DNA from: Cyanophora paradoxa CCMP329
Taxonomy: Eukaryota > Plantae > Glaucophyta
Assembly: GCA_004431415.1 (NCBI GenBank)
Contig: QPMI01000416.1
Location: forward strand, 434,001 to 498,000
Direction: 5' to 3'
DNA length: 64,000 nucleotides
Positions 2,093 through 54,865 of the stretch are shown piece by piece. The translations under genes and the position numbers were made by a program. The notes under the pieces are model-generated. The model ran no database searches and was not told the DNA's origin. It worked only from the letters and a program-made list of their open reading frames with translations. Each line of letters opens with the position of its first letter. The stretch's first letter is position 1.

Positions 2093-5000
2093 ATGCGGCG
2101 GGCGTTCGACGAGCTCTCTGTCGGCAGCGCTGCCGGCCGCGGCGATGATACGCCGCGCCGCCTGGCACCCGCGCTGCGCGGGCAGGGCTCCGACTCCGAC
2201 CAGCCGCGGCCGGCGCAGCAGCCGCTCTGCTTGAGCATTAAGCTCATGGCGCCAGCCACGTACATCGAGCACGCTAAGGCAGTCGGGCAGCTGCCGCGGC
2301 AGTGGATCCCGCATTGGCACTCCCAGGCGGGCGTGGATTCTCCCCCGAGCTCGCTCACGTATTATTGGTGAGCGCGATCGAAGCGCTCACCGCCGCTCGG
2401 CTCGCTCCTTGTGATTGCTTCACGGCTGACGCGCTCGCATGCGCAGTTTCGAATTCCCGCTGGAGCTGCCCGCTAACGCGACGCTGGCGGCGCTCCGAGC
2501 GGGCCTCTACGAGTCCGTGGGTCGCATCATATCCGCTCCCGAGTCCCGAGTCCGCACTGTGCAAGACAGCTCCGGGTTGCGGTACACGTTCAACCCCGAT
2601 TGCGAGCCCGTTTCGGTCGACTACAACTTCTGTGTGAGGTCGTGTCCGGAAGTCCTCCTCATCGATGACGTGCTCCGCTTCCACAACCCGACCCTTGCGG
2701 AGAGGGGCATCCGCACCGGCGACACGCTCTCTTGCTCGTGCATCTGTCTCCCCCCCACCTCTTCCCCCCCCCCCTTCCACCCCCCAGCCCCGCCCCTCCC
2801 CTCCCCCCCTCCCCCCCTCCCCCCCTTCCCCTCCCCCCCACCTCTCGGCCAGCTGCGCCCTTCGCCGCTCCGACCTGCCCTGCAGTGCCTTGCCCCACCC
2901 TATCCTGCCCTGCGCTAGAACCCGGCCTGCTCATCCCCTTCTCCTCCCCTTTCCCCTGCCCCCGCTCCCGCCCCCGCTCCCGCCACTGGCCCCTGCACCT
3001 CGCCTCCTCTCCCCCTCCCCCGCCCCTCCCCTGCCCTCCCCCGCCCCCCCCCTTCCCCGCTCCCGCCCCCACCCTCCCTCCCGCTGCACCGCCCCGCCCT
3101 TATCCTGCCCTTGGCCCGCCCCGCCCTGCCCCGCCCCTCTCTTCCAGCTGCCCTAAGCCGTTCTGCCCTGCCCTGCAGTGCCTTCACCTGCCCTACCCTG
3201 CCCCCCCCCTCCCCTCCATCCCCCGTCTCTCCCCGTCCCCCCTCCCTCCCCCCCCCCCCCAACCCCGGTCCGACCCAGCCTGGCCCAACCCTGCTGGGAT
3301 AATCTGTACTTAGACCGTACTTAGACCAGACCCCGCCCTGCTCATCCCCGCCCCCCCTCCCCCCCTCTCCCCTTACTCCTGCCCCCTGCCCCTCCCCCAC
3401 CCCCGCCCTGCTCCCTTCCCCTCCCCTCCGCTCGCCCCCCCCCCACCCCCCCCCTTCCCCTCCCACCCCCCTTTTCCCCTCCCCTAAACCCGGTCCGGCC
3501 CAGCCTGGGCCGGATAATCTGTTCTGAGCTCGTCATCCCGTTTGCCCACTTCCTTCCCCCTCCCCTCCTTCCCGATCCCCTCACCGCACCCATCCTCGCA
3601 CCGCTCTGCCCTGCCCTGCTCCCCTGCCCTGCACTAAGTCCCCCATCCCCCCCCCTTCCCGCTCCCTGCCCCCCCCCTCCTCCCCCCCCTCTGCCTCCCC
3701 CAGCCATTTACGCCCATCCCACCCGCCCGTCCTGCCATTCCTCTGCCAGTTGCTCGCCTTTTCCTTCTCTCCGCTTCCCAATGTTCCCATGGCACTCTCC
3801 TCGTCATTTCGTCAAGTCTTTTTTTGAAAACATCGCGCGCAGTTTGGATGTCGAGACACTGGACTACACCATGCAATTCCATACGGGAGGCTCTGATGAT
3901 CACCCGGCACCTCTGGGACTGGCCGGCATGGTACATAATTTCAAATCAGCTTTAATTCCGTTGACGTTGTTTCTGATTTCCATCGCATACAGTCGTACCG
4001 TGACCATACCCACAAAAAAGCTGCGAGTTTCAGACAGAAGCGCCTGCTCGACCTCACTCGCGCCGTTCAAGCTTCGTCTGAAGCAACCCGAGCAGCCGAG
4101 GTCAAGCCGATTCCTCTCTAGCTTTATTATCGCTTATTCTTCTTAAGCTTTATATTATTGTTATCGCCTATTCTTCTTCAGCTTCATTATCGACTACCGT
4201 TCCTCTCTGACGAGATTCGTGCAGCTTGAGATCGCCTTGAAACTGGCGGTCAGGAATGGTGACGCGTTCAGTTCTCTCTGTTTTCTCCATTTTGGCGCCG
4301 AGTACTCTTTTGGAGTACGTGCTGGATCTATGATGTGTCTCAAACTTGTGTTTCTGGGATTTATTCTGGCTCTTGCAGGCTGACAACGGGCCGCTGAGCC
4401 TTGATTATCTCTTGGGGTGCGTACGCGCCATGAATCACATGAAGAACGACCGCATGTTTTTGCCCGTCGAGTTCCTCAACGAGTACGTGAATCGTTGCTA
4501 TTCTTATAGCATGCCGATATGATTGCACATTCTTACAGAGAACTTGCGCAGCTTTCTCTTCTGTATCTCGAATTCTTTCTCGGGATTGAGGGGGCGGTTT
4601 TCGTTCGAACGCGAGTTGCCAGACGAAGATCCGAGCCTGGACGTGCACGCTCTTTATGTATGCGCATTCAATCTTTGTCGATTGCGATCGCGGCGATGCA
4701 CACGAACATGCAGCTGACAATGACATGATTGCGTGCGGCAGGATCTTGCCTTCAACAACCAACGTCGTGTCGTCGACTTTATTCTCGACTTCGTTCAGTG
4801 CCTCCGTGCGCCATTAATATTTATATCCCGCCGGCCGTGGGCCTACGCGCTGCTTCTTGTCTGATTCCGCTTATGCAGCCGAGGGGTGGAAATCCAGCGA
4901 AATCGAGTTCTGCAACATCATCTCGGCTTGCGAGGTCCCGGTTGGACGAGCCATCATGCATGAGTCCGTGTCGGCAGGCATCCCGATCCCGCCGGAGGTC

Positions 5001-8000
5001 CTGGCCTACATTTGCTTCGCGAGGATCCCAGACGCCTACGCCGGCTATAACGGTGCGCGTAAATTTAGCTCAGCCCAATCGGGCAATTAAATTAATCCCA
5101 TGGACAGCGGACATTCCCCAGGGCCGCGGTGTAATGTTTTCGAGAGAGGTTCGAGCCGCGCGCCTTAAAACTTCGATTCAGGATTTGGCTCCTCTTACGA
5201 TCCAGATTGCAGGCTCGTGCAAGCGTATTACCTCAGCTTGCGGCGCTAGGGGAGCAAGCAAGCCTGTCCGTCATTGAGGCCCTTAAGGTCCGTCATTGAA
5301 TATAAGTCTCTTGCTGATGATGCTATCTAACGTTCACTGCATTCATAGTACTGTTGCGAGCACGGGCGCGGTCTCCATGATGTGGATTTTGGGCTCCTAC
5401 ACGAAGTTCTGCACTCCATCCCCACAGACAATCCAGCGTTGGGAGAGGCCTCTCTCCAAGCCGCCGTGAACTTCTTTCGCGCAGCACGTGGAGCCCCAGA
5501 AGGCGACATCCTCATGATGCGTTGGAAACGTGCGATGACTGAAACCATCGTGAACTGTCACGCTGCTGTGGCGGCGAGCGCCCAAACGTGGATTCAACGG
5601 GTTCAACCTCATCAATCGAGATTGAAAGCCGCCTTTTCGGAGCTCATTGAAGAGCTGTGCAAAGCCGCCGGAAGCAGCGACGAATCGCATGCGATCAACG
5701 CCGTCGCCGTGATCAAGTGCTTTATCGACTCTTATATCAGAGCCGATTCTTCTAGTAGCTTGAACATTGCAGCGTCAATTGTTGAGCGCACGCTCGAATC
5801 CTTTTTTAAGAGATTTCTCAACGATTGTAAGGCTCGGCAGAATATCCTTGGTGATGATATCGATGCTTCCCGGCAGCCAGAATTCAGATACCCACGTCAA
5901 TCGAGGAGTATTTTTTGGCTAGAGCCCTCTCCAACTTCTTTCGATTCAGCCTCTCGTATTCTGCACATCTTTTCCCCTCCGAGTAGCGAGATTTTCCTCA
6001 AAGCAGCTCGCCGACTCGTACCTGTTTTGGTTACAAGTTCACATCTAGATTCTAATTTTATCATAACTGTGTGTTATGGCTTGCGAGGCCTGATCGGCGA
6101 CCTCGAAACCGTTCTGGCTTCAAATATCCATCAGGTGCGGAAAGTCATTGGAAGTATGATTGCATGATTATGTGTGTAACTCGCGCTGGCAGCTGCAGAT
6201 CGTTTTCCAGTCGCCACCGGCATTCGTTCGATTTTACAAGGACTCTTTGCAGACCCTATCGACGCTCACAGAGCTGGGAAGTGCCATCAGTTCGATAAGC
6301 GACCATGATATTTTCGCTGCAAGTCAGAGCAATTTTGAGAGCGCGTGGCCGGTGCGTGCCTTCGCTTGTGCTTGGGCAGAACGTAATGCGATAGCGAAAT
6401 AATTGCTGCTTGCGCAGAACGTCAAGAGTCTGGTGGATGCACCCATTGTCGAAGATGAATTCGACAGATTGTCGGAAATCGGCTTCAATCATTCGAATCT
6501 AAAGCTATTCGTTCCCCACGACACGTCCCTGATTGTCAAGAGCTCGTGCGTGGCTGCAAATGCATGCCCATCTGCGAAGTTTGCTTAAGAGCTTATTATT
6601 ATGAGTCCGTTCTGGCAGAATCGATCAGCTGGAGCTTATCTATCACGGGAAATTCCCGTGGAGAACCGACCCCGACCACATTGATCAAGGAGGCTTCCAG
6701 GTTCTTCTGGAAGCAATCTAGGTCTCTAGCTGAATCTGCTGCATCTTGATCTCTGCACGCAGGTTAGATTCCAGTCTGCAGCAGAGGACGCTCGTGGGGA
6801 TCCGAGAGCCGAGGAGGGCTTCGGAATCGGCCTGACGAGAGCCTACTTCTCCTTGCTAGCAGCGGCACTGGTTGCTGATAAGGACAGCACTCCCGCCGGG
6901 CCTGAACGTCCGGAGAAGCTATTCAAAGAGAAGGACTACTTGGAGGACGGAGGGCGGGTCTACTGGCTTACAGATCGCCCCGTCCCTCTCGAGTGCGCCC
7001 CTCAATCGTGAATTCTCTGCCGATTGTAATCGCTCGCTGTGCTGCAGGATTCTTGGGCTCTGCGGCTGGGCCATGGGCATCGCTCTATCGATATCGATAT
7101 CGACGAATCATCCATGCAACTTTCCTTTGTCGTTGCCTGTTGCTTTTTACTCGCTTCTACTCAAGAACATCGACCAAATCGATCCTGACTTCGCGCTGGC
7201 GCTCCTGAAAGAGGCCGACCCTGTCTTGGCGAAAAACCTCGAGGTCCGCGCGCACTTTGATTATATTGATTATATTGACTTGCTGACGCGAAGCTGGCCA
7301 CACGTGCACGCAGAAAGCAGACGAAGAGGGCAGTGGCGTCGTCTTCGAGTACACGGGCGTCGACGGAACCGAGCTCGAGCTAGTGCCTGGAGGATCCCAG
7401 ATTCCCGTCACGGCTGAAAACAAGGACCAGTTCATGAAGCTTTACGCTAAAGCACACTTCGAGACGTCGAAGCTGCTCGAGAAGGTGCGCTCAAAACGTT
7501 TGATCAGCTACAGCATTTCCCTGGTGCGCGCTCTAATTCCTTGCCAGATGAAGCACATTCGTGAGGCGTTCTACGCTGCTGCCGTCACGTTTGCACGCAG
7601 CAGGGCAAACGTCACTCCCGACGAGTTCAAGCGGAAGATCGAGGGCGAGACGTAAGCGCGGCTCTGAACCGTATCATACAGAAACGTCAATTTACGCCGT
7701 GCAATCTAGGAGAATCGACGTCGACGACATTCGTGATGCGACGACGTACGAAGAGGGAAGCTACCCCAAAACCTCAGACCAGGTGCGATCGATATCAGTG
7801 GAATCACCAACTTTATCAACCGCCGGCTATCTTGCCCGCCAAGTCATGTCTCGCGTCTAAAATTTCATGCAGATGCGCTGGCTTTTTGAGTACCTCGAAA
7901 CCGCGAGCCAAGACGAGCTCGCGAAATTCTTACAGTTCACGACTGGCACCCCGCGCGCGCCCACTGGAGGCTTCGCTTCATCGACAAGTGCGCTTTTCAT

Positions 8001-28512: not shown

Positions 28513-31023
28513 ATGAACGACCTCCTCATGACCTGCCCACCAGCGCACCAACGCGCGCCATCGTTTGCCTCCGGCGCCCTGGACAGCGGTGCGCGCTTGT
28601 CTTGTTCCCTTGTGCATGATCGCTTCTTTTCTGATCGATTCTGCCCTGTCCGACAGCCCTCCCGACTTTCTCGCCCGCAACTTCGACCACCTCTCCTGGC
28701 TTGACCGCGCCCTCCTCGGCGCCGAGCGCGAAGCCACGAGCTCCCGAGCTTCTGAAAAAGCGGAGTTCAGCGTCCGTGTCCCCGCCCACCGCCTCGGACG
28801 GTTCGCCCGGGTCATCTGTATTCGATTGCGCCTCTCCCCCTGCCGCGATCCGCTCATCCGTCCGCGCGGCGCAGTCTCCTCCGGAAACGAAGGCGTTGAA
28901 AGCGCTGATGGCGCGCGCGGACGCCTCCGTGGTTCGTCCTTGACCGCACGCTTGACCTGTCATATCGCTCTCTGCCAACATCCAAGCTCGCGCGCCCTCG
29001 CAGAAGCATGTCGTGCCAAGAAGCGGTCGCGTAAGCAGGAGAGCTCGTCCCCAGAAGCCCGCGACATCGTGCTGTACAGTGCGCACGCAAGCGAAGCGCC
29101 CCTGTACAGGCCCGCGCCCTCCTGTTCCAATGGCGACCTGTCGCGCAGACAACGTTTTCAAGCAGCCTGGCGAGCGAGTCCCGCGGTCGCGTGCGCTCGA
29201 TTCGCTGCCTTCAAATCCGTCGAAGCCTGACCGCGCCCAGTCGTGGAGGCGGCGTTCAAAGCGACGCGAGACGTTGGCGGTGCCCCGAAGTTCGAGCCTG
29301 CTCTCTTCTCCCGCTACGACTTGAAGGACGCCTCGAAGCCCGGAAAGGTGCGCCCTTCGAGCGTGAAGCGTTCAAGTTGCGCTCCCAGCCACTCCTTAAA
29401 TCATTTCCGCGCGCAGACACGGGACTACCAGATCGTCCGCCTTCGCTTCCCGCCGGACGACGTGCCGACTCTCGAGAGCGCTGTCTCTGGCACGCGCGAG
29501 TACATCGTCGAGGCTCCCGTCCCATTCGCTTGCAGCGGCGCTTGGCTTTGCTGCGCCTGGGATGGTGCGCTTCTTTCGTCTTGACGCGGCTTTGCGCTGC
29601 GCGGCCTTGCGCTGCGCGGCTGACGCGAGCGCCTCGCGCAGTCTCGGGGCAGTGCGTCGTCATCGACGACGGGCTCAAGCCTGCTAACATCCGGGGCTGC
29701 CGCGTCGCGTACCCTGGTCGCGAGGAGAGCGGAGACATCGTCTGCACGGCCCTGCCCGCGGCGGAGATCATCTCGGGCCGCGTCGCTACGTTCTCGCTCC
29801 GCCTCCACTTCAAGCAGGAGAAGCCGAAGAAGACTCGCTTCCGCTTCGTCCTCATTGCGCGCGAGAAGAACGGCGGGCTTCAGCTCTTGATCTCCGACGC
29901 CTTCGCCGTCGGCACGGACTCCGCGCGTGCGCTCTCCAAGCCCTCCCGGCCCGCTTGCGTTTCGCGCCCGACCATCGCCGCAGTGTCCAAGAAGCACAGG
30001 AACGATGCACTGTGCCTGGATCTCGGCGGGCCGGAATTCTACGACGAGGGTGCGGCCTCCTGCGCCCCGCCCCGCCCTCCACGCACACGCGCCGCTGACC
30101 GGTTCCGCGCGCAGCCCGCGGCCAGCGCCGGGGCTCCGTCTCGTCGTCCCCCGCCTCTCCTGCAGGATCGGCCTTCTCATCAGAGCAGGCGTCCCCGGAC
30201 CTTGGGCCGCTGCCGCTGCCGTTGTCCGCTGCTGCCGCTCTGGGGGCCGCGGCCGCCCCAGCGCCGCCCGTGCGTCCCGCGCGCCTCGCCCTCGCCGCCC
30301 GCCCGCCTCTTCGCCCCGCCGACCCTCGCGCAGGCCTGCGCCTGCGGGCAGTTCGCCTCGCCCCTCGCCCAGGGCATCTGCATCCTGCGGCACCTGCAGC
30401 TGGGCTCCCGCGGAGTGGGCCCCCTCACTCCCGAAATGGCCCACGCGCTGGTGCGCTCTCCTTCACCGTCAACTGCGCCGGGCCCTGACAGCACCGCAGC
30501 TCGAGGCCTTGGCGGCCGCCCGCCCGGCACCCTCCCCGAACGGAGGCGGCTTCTCCGCTCCGCCGCCCGCGGCGGGTTACGGCTCCGCCCCGCCCGTGAC
30601 GGGCTTCGGCCCCGCCCCGCCCGCGGCTGGCGACGCGCCGCCCGCGGCCGCCCTTCCGCCGTCCGCGCAAAGCGGCGGTGGCCTCCCCGCTCCGCCCGCG
30701 GGAGCCGGCCCGCCCGCCCCGCCGGCAGCCGCCTTCCACTCGGCGGCGGCCGAAGAACGCCTGGAGGAGGAGGACGGGGGCGGCCTCGCCCCGTTCTCGG
30801 ATTTCACGCCGCAGCACCTCGAAGGTGCGGCTCCCTCCCCCTCTCTCGATCGTTTTTCTTAGCTAATTAAGGATCAGACGCCGAGCCCACTGGATTGGAT
30901 CTAGATCTCGATTCCTACTTGCAGTGGGATGGCGGTCAGTCCGCCCCTGCCTGCCCCCAGCGCGACGCGCTCCTGACCCTCCTCGCAGACACGGCGGGCG
31001 ACACTATGACGCAGGCCCTGTAG
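28513..31023 (+). CDS. Uncharacterised protein, putative Ig-fold (p53/RHD/velvet/CudA-like) transcription factor
   Basis: Intron-rich gene with a basic KKRSRK motif and a beta-rich block VATFSLRLHFKQEKPKKTRFRFVLIAREKNGGLQLLISDAFAV..SKKHR. A Pro/Ala-rich region precedes an acidic-aromatic C-terminus GLDLDLDSYLQWDGDTAGDTMTQAL*. The function is an inference. Confidence 0.5.
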
Positions 31024-31140
31024 CGGGCCCCGTCCGATGCCCGTTGCCCCTGGGTGATGCACCTTTGCAACACCGGGGGTAGCGGCGCATACGAACCGAC
31101 GGCCTCCTCCTCGACCTTCGAGGGGAGCGCCGACGCGTGA

Positions 31141-31467
31141 CTCGAGTCGGGACCGCGAGGAGCGCGAGGAGAACGAGCTAAGAAGGGGCTCGTTCTCCTC
31201 GCGCTCCTCGCGGTCCCGACTCGAGACGGAGCGACGCGACGCGACTCCACGCGACGCGACGCGATACGACGCGGCGGGAAGCGCCTCTGCGCTTCCCGCC
31301 GATCGGAACGCGACGGACCAGAAGCGCGGGGGCGTTCTCAGACGCCCTCGCGCTTCTCGTCCTTCGACGCCTCCGCGATCCTCGGGCGCGGAGCGGCGCG
31401 GGACGAGCGAGCTCCTTCTTGGCTCGCTCGTCCCGCGCCGCTCGGCGCCCGAGGATCGCGGAGGCGT
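31141..31467 (+). other. Four-hairpin structured element with complementary terminal loops
   Basis: A perfect 38 bp stem (31141-31225), a 13 bp stem (31272-31301), a ~16-20 bp stem (31315-31362) and a 46 bp stem with one mismatch (31367-31467), all read directly. Confidence 0.85.
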
Positions 31468-32048
31468 TCTTAGTGATTAGGCCTCCAGCCTTTATAGAGC
31501 CTTTAGATTGTAACTGCATATCTTTCATTTGCCTCTTCTTCTTGAAGCTCGGTCTTGAATTGCAGCGGCGCATTTTTTTTGTACCCTTATTTGACTGCCG
31601 TCAAGAGTAGTTCATACGCCGTAGCTGGTTTCGCCAGATCATGTTAAAGGCCTCGCCCATTCTGTAATGCCAGGACTCTCGCTCAGCGGCTGAGTTGGCA
31701 CACGGCGGCACGGTTATTTTCAACTGTGATCAATTAACTTTTTGAAACGCGCGTCAAACCTTCGCCAGTAGTCTTGAAGCGCGTCGACACTTCGCCAGTC
31801 TTAGTCTGCTGCTTATGTCACAGTGCCTCTATATTATATTAAATTATTTGAATATTAAGCTGCCAGGCTAGCTGCATAGCGCTGCTAATTGTTCTAACTA
31901 ATAATAATCTAGATCTACTGTTTCATCTGAGCAACTGACAAGGGGAAAATTGAAAGAAGTGGACCCGGCCTAGACTCTAGAAGACCCAATTGCAAGCTGA
32001 AAAAAAGAAACTAGCACTGCTGCTATGCATATGACTAAATTTGTAGGG

Positions 32049-34588
32049 CTACTCGCCCGTGCGGAATCGCTTCCAGACGCGGGCCGACTCCTCCAGGAGG
32101 CCCTGCGGGGGCGGGCGCTTCCCCGTACCCGGCACCATCCGCTCGTACTGGGCCTCGGCTAGGAGCCGGTCCAGGCAGGCGTACCCCTTCAGAACGGGGT
32201 CCTGCAGGTGCACCGGGTACTCGGCCAGGCTGATCTGCGCCCACGGGACGGAGGAGAGGACTTGCTCGGCGGCTTCGGGGGCGTAGCCGGGGTGGGCCTG
32301 GATCCAGGCGCGGGCGGCGGCGGCCGAGCTGGCGGCGGGGCGCTTGGCCGCTGCGGCTGCCTGGAGGACGCCTGCAAAGATGTGGGGCTCCAGAAACTGG
32401 AGCATCCGGACGGTGGGCGAGTCCTCGGGCTTGGGAAGCCGCGGCGGGCGCGGCCGCGCCGCGAACTCGCGCTCCGACGCGGCCGCCACAGCGCCCAGCT
32501 CGTCCCGCACGGCTGCGAGGCAGGCCAGCTGGAGCCGGAGTCCGATCGGGATCTCCAGCAAAGGCTCGCCCGCCGGCGCTGCCGCCGCCGGCGCCCCGGG
32601 CTGCTGCTGTGGCGACCGCTGCGGTGACGGCTGCGGCTGAGGCTGCTCCGGCGCCGCGGGCAGGTCGAGGAGCGGTCCGAAGGACGGCAGGAGCGATCCG
32701 ACGGGGACCTCAGCTCCGATCCGCCGCCGCGCGAGCGCCCACGTCCTTAGCAGCGTCTCCGACCCGGGCGCCACGGTCAGCTGCCCCAGAATCGCGTAAA
32801 TCCGCGAGGGCGCCGCGCCGGAGTACGCTAGGGCGTCCGGCCTTGTGAACGTGATCGTCTTTGCGAGCATCTCGGGCATGAGCTGCTCGTCGATTTCCGC
32901 CCAGGTTTCCGCGCCCGTCTCGCCCGCCACCTCCTCCGCGTTCTCCTTCACGAAGGCGCAGCAGTGGTTTACGAGGGTCCTCCAGACCGCCTCCTCGTCC
33001 TCCGGACCCTCTAGCCCGCTCTGCGAACGAAACAAGCGTCGGCGACCCAGTGAAGAAGTGAAGAAAACGAGCAAGAGCACCTGGGAGTGGGCCCAGAGGA
33101 AGGTCTCGACCACAGTCGCCGGCGTCAGCGTCTGCCGAATCGCCTCCACGCACAGCGACGGCAGGCCCCGCACGCCCCTGCCGCCGGGTCAGCCTCCACC
33201 AGCGCCGCCACCCCCCCTGCGGCGCAGGGGCCCCGCACCAGTAGCAGGCCAGCGCGAGCAGCGGCCGCAGCTCCGCAGCCGGCACCGCGGGGCTCACGTG
33301 CGTGTACATGTACCGCAGCGCCGCCTCCGCCGCCGCGAACGTCGCCGGCTGCCCGTGCGGCCCCTCGTCGTCGAGCCGCAGCACGCCCTCCTGCCCTTCC
33401 CGCATGCGCTCCAGCGCGCCGCTCCGGAAGTAGGCGCTGCCGCGCGCCAGCACCTCCCGGTGCGCCCCGAGGCTCTGCGCCGAGGCGTCGGCGGCGAGGC
33501 GGAGGGGGGTACGCGAAGCGGAGCGGGCGGGGGGTACGCGAGCGGAGCGGAGCGCACCTGACCGTCGACGACGATGCGGAAGTCGTGCGGCGTGAACGGT
33601 ACGCTCCCCACCAGCTCCGCGAGGCGGTTGAGGGGTACGCCTGAGCTGCCGGAGAGGGGTACAGCTCCTGTCGCGCGCGCGCCGCGGGTCCGGTGGAGGT
33701 TGTCGGCAGTCGCCCAGAGCTCCGGCGAAGCGACGAGCGTGTCGATCGTAAGATGTACCGTCTGCTGCGGCTGTGGCTTCTTCGCTCTGAGGGACGAGTG
33801 AGCGCGAAGAGATCGAACACGCGCAAACAGCAAAACCAGAGGCGGCGCACGGCTTGGAGGGATCCGCGGCGATAGCGGCCTTGATAGATACGCGGATCGT
33901 CAGCTTGTCGTCCTCCAAGAACGCCCCCTTGCCGCCCCTCAGCTCTTCCAAGGACACGAACTGCGTGGGGAGATCGATCAGCGAGCGCTAGCTCTGGTAC
34001 AACTGGTCGCTGGCAAACGCAGGCGCGGGAGCGCACCGTATCGAAGCGCATCTCCGCCTGAGGGCTGAACGTGAATCCGCGATTGAAAACCCGGCGGGCC
34101 TTTACGGACGCGTCCGCAGACACAAGGGACAGGCGTATGTCCGCAGTGCACTTCGCCGGTTGCGGCGGCGGCGGCGGCGGCGGTTCTGATAGCCGCTGGG
34201 ATCCGTACGCCTTGACTCGCGGCGGCGGCGGCTCGTCAAAGATGAGATCAACAGAGAGGTACCGCCCGAGCCCCTCCCGCGCGCCGAGCGGGTGGACGCG
34301 CACGCGCCTGCACAACGATGTGTTAGCGCTTGTACGAGCGTGCGCCAGCGACGCAGGCGCAGGCGAGGCGCCCGCGCGGGATGCGGACCAGTTGAAGTCG
34401 AGGCATCGCGCCCTGTCCGACAAAACCGGGCCCCTGCTCTTCGAGAAGTCTGGGAACACTACATCAAACAGTCCTTTTGCCGGCACTGCAGGCGCGCTCG
34501 GCCCTGGAGTCGGGGCGCTCGCCGGCTCTGCGGCGGCGGGGCAAGTGAGGCGGATGTGCATGTGAAGCGAGCACCGCGCACCGGCCAT
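32049..34588 (-). CDS. MATH-BTB/POZ(-BACK) protein, SPOP/BPM-like CUL3 substrate adaptor, copy 1
   Basis: MATH: FDVVFPDFSK...NW|RVRVHPLG...YLSVDL...|FVSLEELR...FLEDDKLTIRVSI. BTB: DFRIVVDGQ|SLGAHREVLARGSAYFRS...MREGQEG...ALRYMYT...LLALACYW|GVRGLPSLC. Basic C-terminus KRPP...WKRFRTGE*. Confidence 0.9.
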
Positions 34589-54467: not shown

Positions 54468-54865
54468 TAGGGTTGCCGTGTCCGATGTCAATTGACATTG
54501 ACATGTCAATGTCAGTTGACATGTCATGTCAATGTCCACGGGTCCGGGTTGACATGTCCATTGACATTGGGGGGGATACCCCTCTAAACAAGCTAAAACG
54601 CCTGCAAATCATGATTAAAACATGTAAGCAGCACTCTGCAAGCGTTAGCAGCACGTTTCTGATGTTAGGAAGGAGGCAGAAGGCAGCAGGGAGGCGCTGA
54701 GGACCTCGCCCAAGCTGCCCCGCCGCCTCACTTTTGGAATATAATATAATATAATATAATATAATAATCAATGTCAGTTGACATGTCGGTTGACATGTCA
54801 AATGTCCGATGTCAATGTCCACAGGGTAGACTGACATGTCAATTGACACGTGCACGGCAACCCTA
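54468..54865. mobile_element. Non-autonomous hAT-superfamily MITE (398 bp)
   Basis: Perfect 13 bp TIRs TAGGGTTGCCGTG / CACGGCAACCCTA and an identical 8 bp TSD GGTGGCAG (54460-54467 and 54866-54873). Subterminal TGACATGTCA palindrome arrays flank an AT-rich core with no transposase. Confidence 0.92.

Follow-up and report, generated by a model that had tools for sequence, protein, structure and literature searches.

The 64-kb stretch of the Cyanophora paradoxa genome analysed here (the window) is eukaryotic DNA with a GC content of 68% and short GT-AG introns; in gene density, intron length and the overlap of 3' UTRs it agrees with the published description of this genome (PMC6704402). Positions 4001-8000 have a GC content of 0.52, compared with 0.61-0.80 in the rest of the window. 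At 31141-31467, between two convergent genes, lies an element of 327 nt composed of four hairpins, which is the subject of this report.

The exons of the + strand gene are defined by spliced RNA contigs (...30500-30824, 30878-30934 and 30989 onward): a contig of run X15 contains the GT..AG joints 30824/30878 and 30934/30989 and runs to 31147. The contigs of the RNA-type runs are spliced and therefore represent RNA. Translation of the joined, RNA-supported exons in frame places the stop codon (TAG) at 31021-31023, which is 117 nt from hairpin 1 and so bears out the distance of approximately 120 nt given in the initial annotation. That annotation also described the gene as a putative transcription factor, an assignment that our searches do not confirm: the exons, searched separately, have no Pfam match, and comparison of 29231-29925 with a protein atlas gives weak Ig-like/CARDB-type leads only (best score 0.81). 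The product has an acidic C-terminus. At 30296-30629, a contig shared by RNA run X15 and DNA run X4 connects the two ends of this interval through 27 other letters and lacks GT..AG ends; rather than a splice, it probably represents a similar low-complexity (Pro/Ala-rich) sequence from another part of the genome.

The second gene lies on the - strand and ends with a stop codon at 32049-32051. This ORF end and the RNA-supported + strand gene confirm that the flanking genes are convergent, as had been proposed. The upstream ORFs of the - strand gene (32049-34588) look MATH/BTB-type by eye; its raw ORFs have no Pfam match, and a protein word search with its last exon (E <=0.001) found no relatives and no orthologous locus for comparison. 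Within this last exon, at 32130-32243, X4 contains a 114-nt contig with four differences (at 32172, 32190, 32205 and 32210) and a higher depth (81 vs 59), and the RNA and DNA contigs of all runs break in this interval, which points to a paralogue or a second allele.

All four hairpins, together with a spacer of the (CGCGA)n type, were found at the positions that the initial annotation had given them. The features of the locus are as follows:

30989-31147, + strand: last exon of the + strand gene, with the stop codon TAG (31021-31023) followed by as much of the 3' UTR as RNA contigs support.
31141-31225: hairpin 1; arms 31141-31178 and 31188-31225, 38/38 Watson-Crick pairs; 9-nt loop TAAGAAGGG, purine-rich on the + strand.
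31174-31192, + strand: apex copy 1; CGAGC, T-AAGAAGG-G, GCTCG.
31226-31271: spacer of (ACGCG)n-like repeats.
31272-31301: hairpin 2; arms 31272-31284 and 31289-31301, 13/13 pairs; loop CTCT.
31311-31366: hairpin 3; arms 31311-31335 and 31342-31366 (25 nt each), 88% paired; loop TCTCAG.
31367-31467: hairpin 4; arms 31367-31412 and 31422-31467, 45/46 pairs, the exception being a G.G mismatch; loop of 9 nt, TCCTTCTTG, in which purines predominate on the - strand.
31408-31426, - strand (read on that strand): apex copy 2; CGAGC, C-AAGAAGG-A, GCTCG.
31450, - strand: fixed fragment end in run X19, located 18 nt into hairpin 4 within its outer arm.
31468-32048, - strand: 3' UTR of the - strand gene, AT-rich (44% GC), covered by RNA contigs of X15, X17 and X19.
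31509-31513, + strand: TGTAA, candidate 3'-end signal of the + strand gene.

The four-hairpin structure is far beyond chance on both strands. Folding of a 371-nt region gives -315.1 kcal/mol for the + strand (z = -19.5) and -312.8 kcal/mol for the - strand (z = -19.9), and none of 100 dinucleotide shuffles folds equally well. As DNA, hairpin 1 has an energy of -57.1 kcal/mol (z -14.3) and hairpin 4 an energy of -73.7 kcal/mol (z -13.8), with values of approximately -57 and -74 kcal/mol, respectively, on either strand. Only six hairpins with at least 14 pairs are present in the 64-kb window, three of them in the element; five shuffled windows contain none. The 25-nt arms of hairpin 3 form 22 Watson-Crick pairs, two mismatches and one G-U pair (on the + strand only). 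Hairpins 1 and 4 are separated by 141 non-coding bases.

The element also stands out in composition. It has a GC content of 72.5% and a CpG observed/expected ratio of 1.58, compared with a GC content of 44% in the adjoining non-coding DNA, and the shift at 31467/31468 is sharp. The pentamer CGCGA is enriched approximately 11-fold within the element, and a CCTCGCG..CTCG-like motif is common to the stems of hairpins 1, 3 and 4. Taken with the CpG ratio, this motif and the CGCGA enrichment make the element look built from one CG-rich short repeat. Smaller palindromes are nested in hairpin 1: its base (31139-31148) is a small palindrome, GACTCGAGTC, with an XhoI site, and its 3' base (31217-31228) is a second quasi-palindrome, CCGACTCGAGACGG. 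The few other strong hairpins in the window include an AT-rich nested palindrome of TGTCAAT/ATTGACA units at 54485-54526 (stems of 9-16 pairs) and, near the window start, a 16-pair hairpin (13 perfect) with the loop CCTG at 399-436.

Sequencing runs were compared as contigs of 31-letter words. The independent DNA run X4 tiles the locus with unitigs at 29500-31178, 31149-31217, 31215-31402 and 31432-32159, one of which (31149-31217, 69 nt) is centred on the loop of hairpin 1. Since these unitigs carry the element, it is real in DNA and not an assembly artefact. The DNA depth of X4 falls approximately five-fold, from about 60 outside the element to 12-15 inside it. Across fourteen DNA runs, 0.91-0.99 of the sampled words of 30600-31900 are present: the share is 0.99 in three runs, which may be the source of the assembled sequence, and 0.91-0.93 in eleven, among them X5-X14. 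The X4 unitig that matches 31215-31402 does so with one other letter and then continues with 15 letters unlike the window, and the next unitig starts symmetrically at 31432; there may be a strain variant at the apex of hairpin 4 (31403-31431).

RNA enters the element from both sides. The 3' UTR of the + strand gene reaches 31147 in an RNA contig, 7 nt into hairpin 1, and the RNA contigs of the - strand gene (31500-32159 in X15, 31525-32500 in X17 and 31450-32243 in X19) reach at most 18 nt into hairpin 4. On 31148-31449 there is no RNA contig in these three RNA-type runs, and the word shares of six RNA-type runs (0.31-0.53) are consistent with none of them holding the element interior. This gap is not proof of silence, because the DNA depth of X4 also falls here, the RNA depth of the + strand gene is low (5-7), and GC-rich perfect hairpins defeat reverse transcription and short-read chemistry. 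The earlier suggestion of a structured 3' UTR or small-RNA precursor is still the strongest functional interpretation, although the support is partial: RNA contigs extend into each outer hairpin, and no contig lies over the interior.

At the fixed fragment end at 31450, adapter letters directly abut the sequence of the - strand gene, with no A/T run between them. The assignment of X19 to RNA is a guess, as its piece of this gene contains no intron. The depth of the + strand gene in X19 is zero, and the end therefore belongs to RNA of the - strand gene if X19 is an RNA run. Such an end is as consistent with a stop in priming or reverse transcription as it is with a cut 18 bp above the stem base.

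No AT-rich stretch is present within the element, and the first signal-like sequence, TGTAA at 31509, lies beyond hairpin 4 (42 nt past it); the 3' UTR of the + strand mRNA therefore most likely includes hairpins 1-4 and extends over the end of the - strand mRNA. TGTAA, which we treat as a lead only, is of the type that serves as a poly(A) signal in green algae such as Chlamydomonas, and might have this role in a glaucophyte. Many overlapping 3' UTRs have been described in C. paradoxa (PMC6704402).

Hairpins 1 and 4 have different outer stems and the same core, CGAGC-[9 nt]-GCTCG, as the initial annotation had observed. This common apex is 19 nt in length with the loop core AAGAAGG, and the pattern, searched with up to two mismatches, is found at only two sites in the 64-kb window, one on each strand. 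The chance probability of this sharing is approximately 5e-7. Outside the apex, the likeness of the two stems is not significant (p 0.13, dinucleotide shuffles), and the 20/30 identities that can be aligned between them are a composition effect. Hairpins 2 and 3 were likewise considered as homologues of each other and rejected: they have GAAGCGC alone in common (p 0.31). A perfect stem is identical on both strands, and therefore the loop alone gives a hairpin its orientation: the apex of hairpin 4 is the apex of hairpin 1 reversed.

Because the two apexes are inverted copies of one 19-nt motif, their loops are necessarily complementary. As + strand RNA they would pair through seven Watson-Crick pairs and two terminal G-U pairs, exactly as the initial annotation had stated, which provides the six or more complementary bases that kissing loops require. 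The preference for the + strand that was read from the G-U pairs is weak. It depends on three positions, namely two T..G pairs that close the loops and a single pair within hairpin 3, and amounts to -9.6 vs -9.4 kcal/mol for the loop duplex and 2.3 of 315 kcal/mol for the whole fold.

The kissing interaction itself, in which pairing between the loops of hairpins 1 and 4 in + strand RNA would draw the element together as a compact regulatory fold, is feasible on both steric and energetic grounds. The seven Watson-Crick and two G-U pairs, worth -9.6 kcal/mol, are consistent with it, and loops of 9 nt suit kissing complexes of 6-7 bp such as those of the HIV-1 DIS and ColE1 RNA I/II. We nevertheless consider this fold very improbable, as the same complementarity arises automatically from the inverted apex and is just as strong on the - strand (-9.4 kcal/mol). 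In addition, no homologue was found in the window, among the metagenome matches listed or among the viral matches, and hence there is no covariation; the presence of both hairpins on one RNA is an assumption, with RNA contigs entering the outer hairpins only. The simplest explanation of the loop complementarity is that it results from the mirrored arrangement, and it is not evidence for a selected kissing contact. More generally, complementary loops in paired hairpins need not imply a kissing interaction.

The element does not belong to a known RNA family, in keeping with the initial annotation: an Rfam search of the 64 kb gave no matches at gathering thresholds. Sub-threshold matches (E up to 1) were generic miRNA-precursor shapes only and occurred on both strands, the best being mir-4667 with 49.2 bits against a threshold of 68; the supplements of PMC3700990 contain no miRNA sequences for comparison. 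Scans for bacterial-type terminators and promoters, which do not apply to a eukaryote, found none. A BLAST search of 31000-32050 against the window returned the self match and arm-to-arm matches only, with no second copy of the element, and no other loop of the AAGAAGG kind is present in the window on a stem of at least nine pairs. Exact matches to the apex number at least 120 in metagenomes (one of them from a gut metagenome) and 78 in a viral collection, and lie mostly in coding DNA. All of the metagenome matches listed and all of the viral matches have stems of eight pairs or fewer, and are therefore chance matches.

The stems carry information on their own origin. Hairpins 1, 2 and 4 together contain 96 Watson-Crick pairs, no G-U pairs and one mismatch. 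An RNA helix under long selection tolerates G-U pairs and drifts, and this record therefore argues for copying at the DNA level; the exact repeats are also what template switching predicts. With zero or one mismatch per 76-92 stem bases, the stems must either be young, with a neutral divergence of no more than approximately 1%, or have their match maintained at the DNA level. Template switching is documented to produce, in a single event, perfect stems that are tens of bases long, and to invert loops without altering the stems (Monttinen and Loytynoja 2022, PMC8794818); such hairpins have also been described by Loytynoja and Goldman (2017, PMC5453318). Copying alone leaves the apex unexplained: its presence on two unrelated stems needs a constraint on the apex, a small seed hairpin of which two copies existed prior to stem growth, or an origin from a mobile element.

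Our preferred interpretation, held tentatively and with somewhat less than even confidence, is that the element is a young, DNA-level palindrome cluster lying where two convergent genes share 3' sequence, and that RNase III-type enzymes cut its transcripts. One CG-rich short motif would have been copied in inverted orientation, by template switching or fold-back repair, giving rise to a palindrome cluster situated where the 3' ends of the two genes meet. The + strand mRNA would then carry hairpins 1-4 in its 3' UTR, and the end of the - strand mRNA would fall at hairpin 4 or slightly within it. Transcribed, hairpins 1 and 4 would form perfect or near-perfect duplexes of 38 and 46 bp, which are likely substrates for RNase III or Dicer, and cutting would yield small RNAs along with lowered or trimmed host transcripts, as with DCL3 in Chlamydomonas. 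C. paradoxa has homologues of Dicer, Argonaute and RdRP as well as abundant small RNAs (PMC3700990). Weighing against this interpretation are the lack of RNA contigs on 31148-31449, the conserved apex that copying alone leaves unexplained, the weakness of the strand evidence, the single locus, the lack of any homologue in our searches and the lack of covariation.

The same palindromes could instead be inert, that is, neutral products of palindrome-making mutation that are tolerated between two genes and have no role in RNA or DNA. The perfect Watson-Crick pairing of the large stems, the low-complexity CG-rich motif, the single locus in the window and the lack of an RNA contig over the interior would all be expected of such a by-product, and were this the correct explanation, the locus would be a large and well-preserved example of palindrome making. 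We regard it as unlikely, if still a serious contender. A 19-nt apex on unrelated stems is not expected from independent random copying. The contrast between an element of 72.5% GC with a CpG ratio of 1.58 and the adjoining non-coding DNA of 44% GC also speaks against it. Moreover, both transcripts reach into the element, and the hairpins therefore cannot be without effect on those RNAs. The mirrored apex has a further possible reading, in which the element is a symmetric module that ends transcripts in both directions: each convergent mRNA first meets a long hairpin with the same purine loop in its own sense, and an apex reader (RNase III or Dicer-like) would cut the stem at a fixed distance, with 31450 as a candidate site, ending both transcripts and blocking read-through. 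The apex (N-AAGAAGG-N on CGAGC/GCTCG) is indeed identical in the sense of each transcript, the RNA contigs of each gene extend no further than the hairpin nearest to it (to 31147 and to 31450-31525), and the fixed end in X19 lies 18 nt inside the stem without an A-tail. However, these stops may be technical, given the failure of reverse transcription and sequencing in GC-rich hairpins and the drop in DNA depth, and the RNA status of X19 is guessed. The motif is on no other hairpin in the window, and such a module is therefore not a general device. We consider it improbable that the element acts in this way, or that it represents a eukaryotic hairpin-defined bidirectional 3'-end signal, possibly mobile in origin. 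If it does, the mirrored apex presented in the same sense to both transcripts would be a two-way transcript boundary defined by hairpins, in a genome with frequent overlap between 3' UTRs.

Two further explanations treat the outer hairpins as DNA sites. In one, the element is a miniature or remnant of a hairpin-ended mobile element, with hairpins 1 and 4 as its mirrored ends, which accords with the strand of the purine loop (+ in the left hairpin, - in the right one), with a conserved apex on stems that are free to vary and with the sharp composition change at 31467/31468. The initial annotation had raised a related idea, namely that the element holds two recombination or nicking sites belonging to a mobile element. 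Our searches gave no support for it: the 64 kb contain no second copy, and no apex match with a long stem occurs among the at least 120 metagenome matches as listed or the 78 viral matches. The outer ends of the element, CTCGAGTC... and ...GGAGGCGT, are not complementary and hence do not form terminal inverted repeats; the only inverted copies are the sub-terminal 19-nt apexes. The flanks, GCGTGA and TCTTAG, differ and give no clear target-site duplication, as a 4-nt GTGA is obtained only if the right end is moved by 5 nt. The interior consists of a microsatellite and two hairpins, with no transposase or integrase gene seen nearby. On balance a mobile origin appears doubtful, slightly less so than transcript ending in both directions. 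Least probable of all, to the point that we give it very little credence, is inversion of 31188-31412 by site-specific recombination between two oppositely oriented sites of the lox type, each having inverted arms around an asymmetric core. The locus does offer two sites in inverted orientation, with cores of 7 nt that are asymmetric and inner arms that are identical over 5 bp, but the arms are alike over these 5 bp only, the outermost loop positions differ between the copies and the long palindromic arms are not needed by the model. No recombinase gene was seen nearby, the neighbouring ORFs being without a Pfam match, and the X4 unitigs are colinear with the window on 31215-31402, a comparison in which 31-letter words are blind to loop orientation within a 38-bp perfect stem.

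Several known systems resemble parts of the element. In the HIV-1 DIS, ColE1 RNA I/II and Ty1, as here, two hairpin loops have at least seven complementary bases, but in those RNAs the complementarity is conserved and covarying, whereas in C. paradoxa it is a geometric consequence of an inverted motif and is equal on both strands. For Ty1, kissing loops are treated in the context of RNA dimerisation (PMC5454406).

Hairpins behind genes can also be processing signals. Stem-loops recognized by the yeast RNase III Rnt1p provide fail-safe termination of Pol II transcription, and Drosha cleaves hairpins in mRNAs such as that of DGCR8. The latter case is cited in PMC4817775. As in these systems, the C. 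paradoxa hairpins lie behind a gene; in those of Rnt1p and Drosha, the geometry of the loop or stem is recognized and the cut falls at a set distance, so that the transcript is terminated or destabilized. In contrast to the AGNN tetraloop of Rnt1p substrates, the C. paradoxa loops are 9 nt in length and purine-rich, and the sole candidate cut, at 31450, comes from one run of uncertain kind.

The hairpins attributed to template switching (PMC8794818, PMC5453318) are a close match at the DNA level, with perfect reverse-complement stems of tens of bases. Their loops are invertible and they arise in one event, whereas such an event in C. paradoxa is deduced from the present sequence of the element. 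The template-switch account also differs from this locus in that two hairpins with different stems share a 19-nt apex.

At the RNA level, the nearest counterparts of the preferred reading are the targets of Chlamydomonas DCL3, which cuts at least 43 mRNAs with hairpins in their UTRs or exons, producing small RNAs and lowering the host mRNA (Valli et al. 2016, PMC4817775). In both cases a unicellular alga with Dicer has a protein-coding gene with long fold-backs, almost completely paired, in 3' UTR sequence. Cutting has been demonstrated for the DCL3 targets, whereas the C. paradoxa element is known from its sequence and from RNA contigs at its outer edges; it further differs in having two stems with a shared, mirrored apex together with two small hairpins, and glaucophytes are far from green algae. 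If the element is cut as RNA, it would be a clear natural case, from the little-studied glaucophytes, of a gene with a Dicer-type substrate in its own 3' UTR. It would thus extend a mechanism shown mainly in Chlamydomonas and animals, and would link that mechanism to the making of its substrate in one step at the DNA level.
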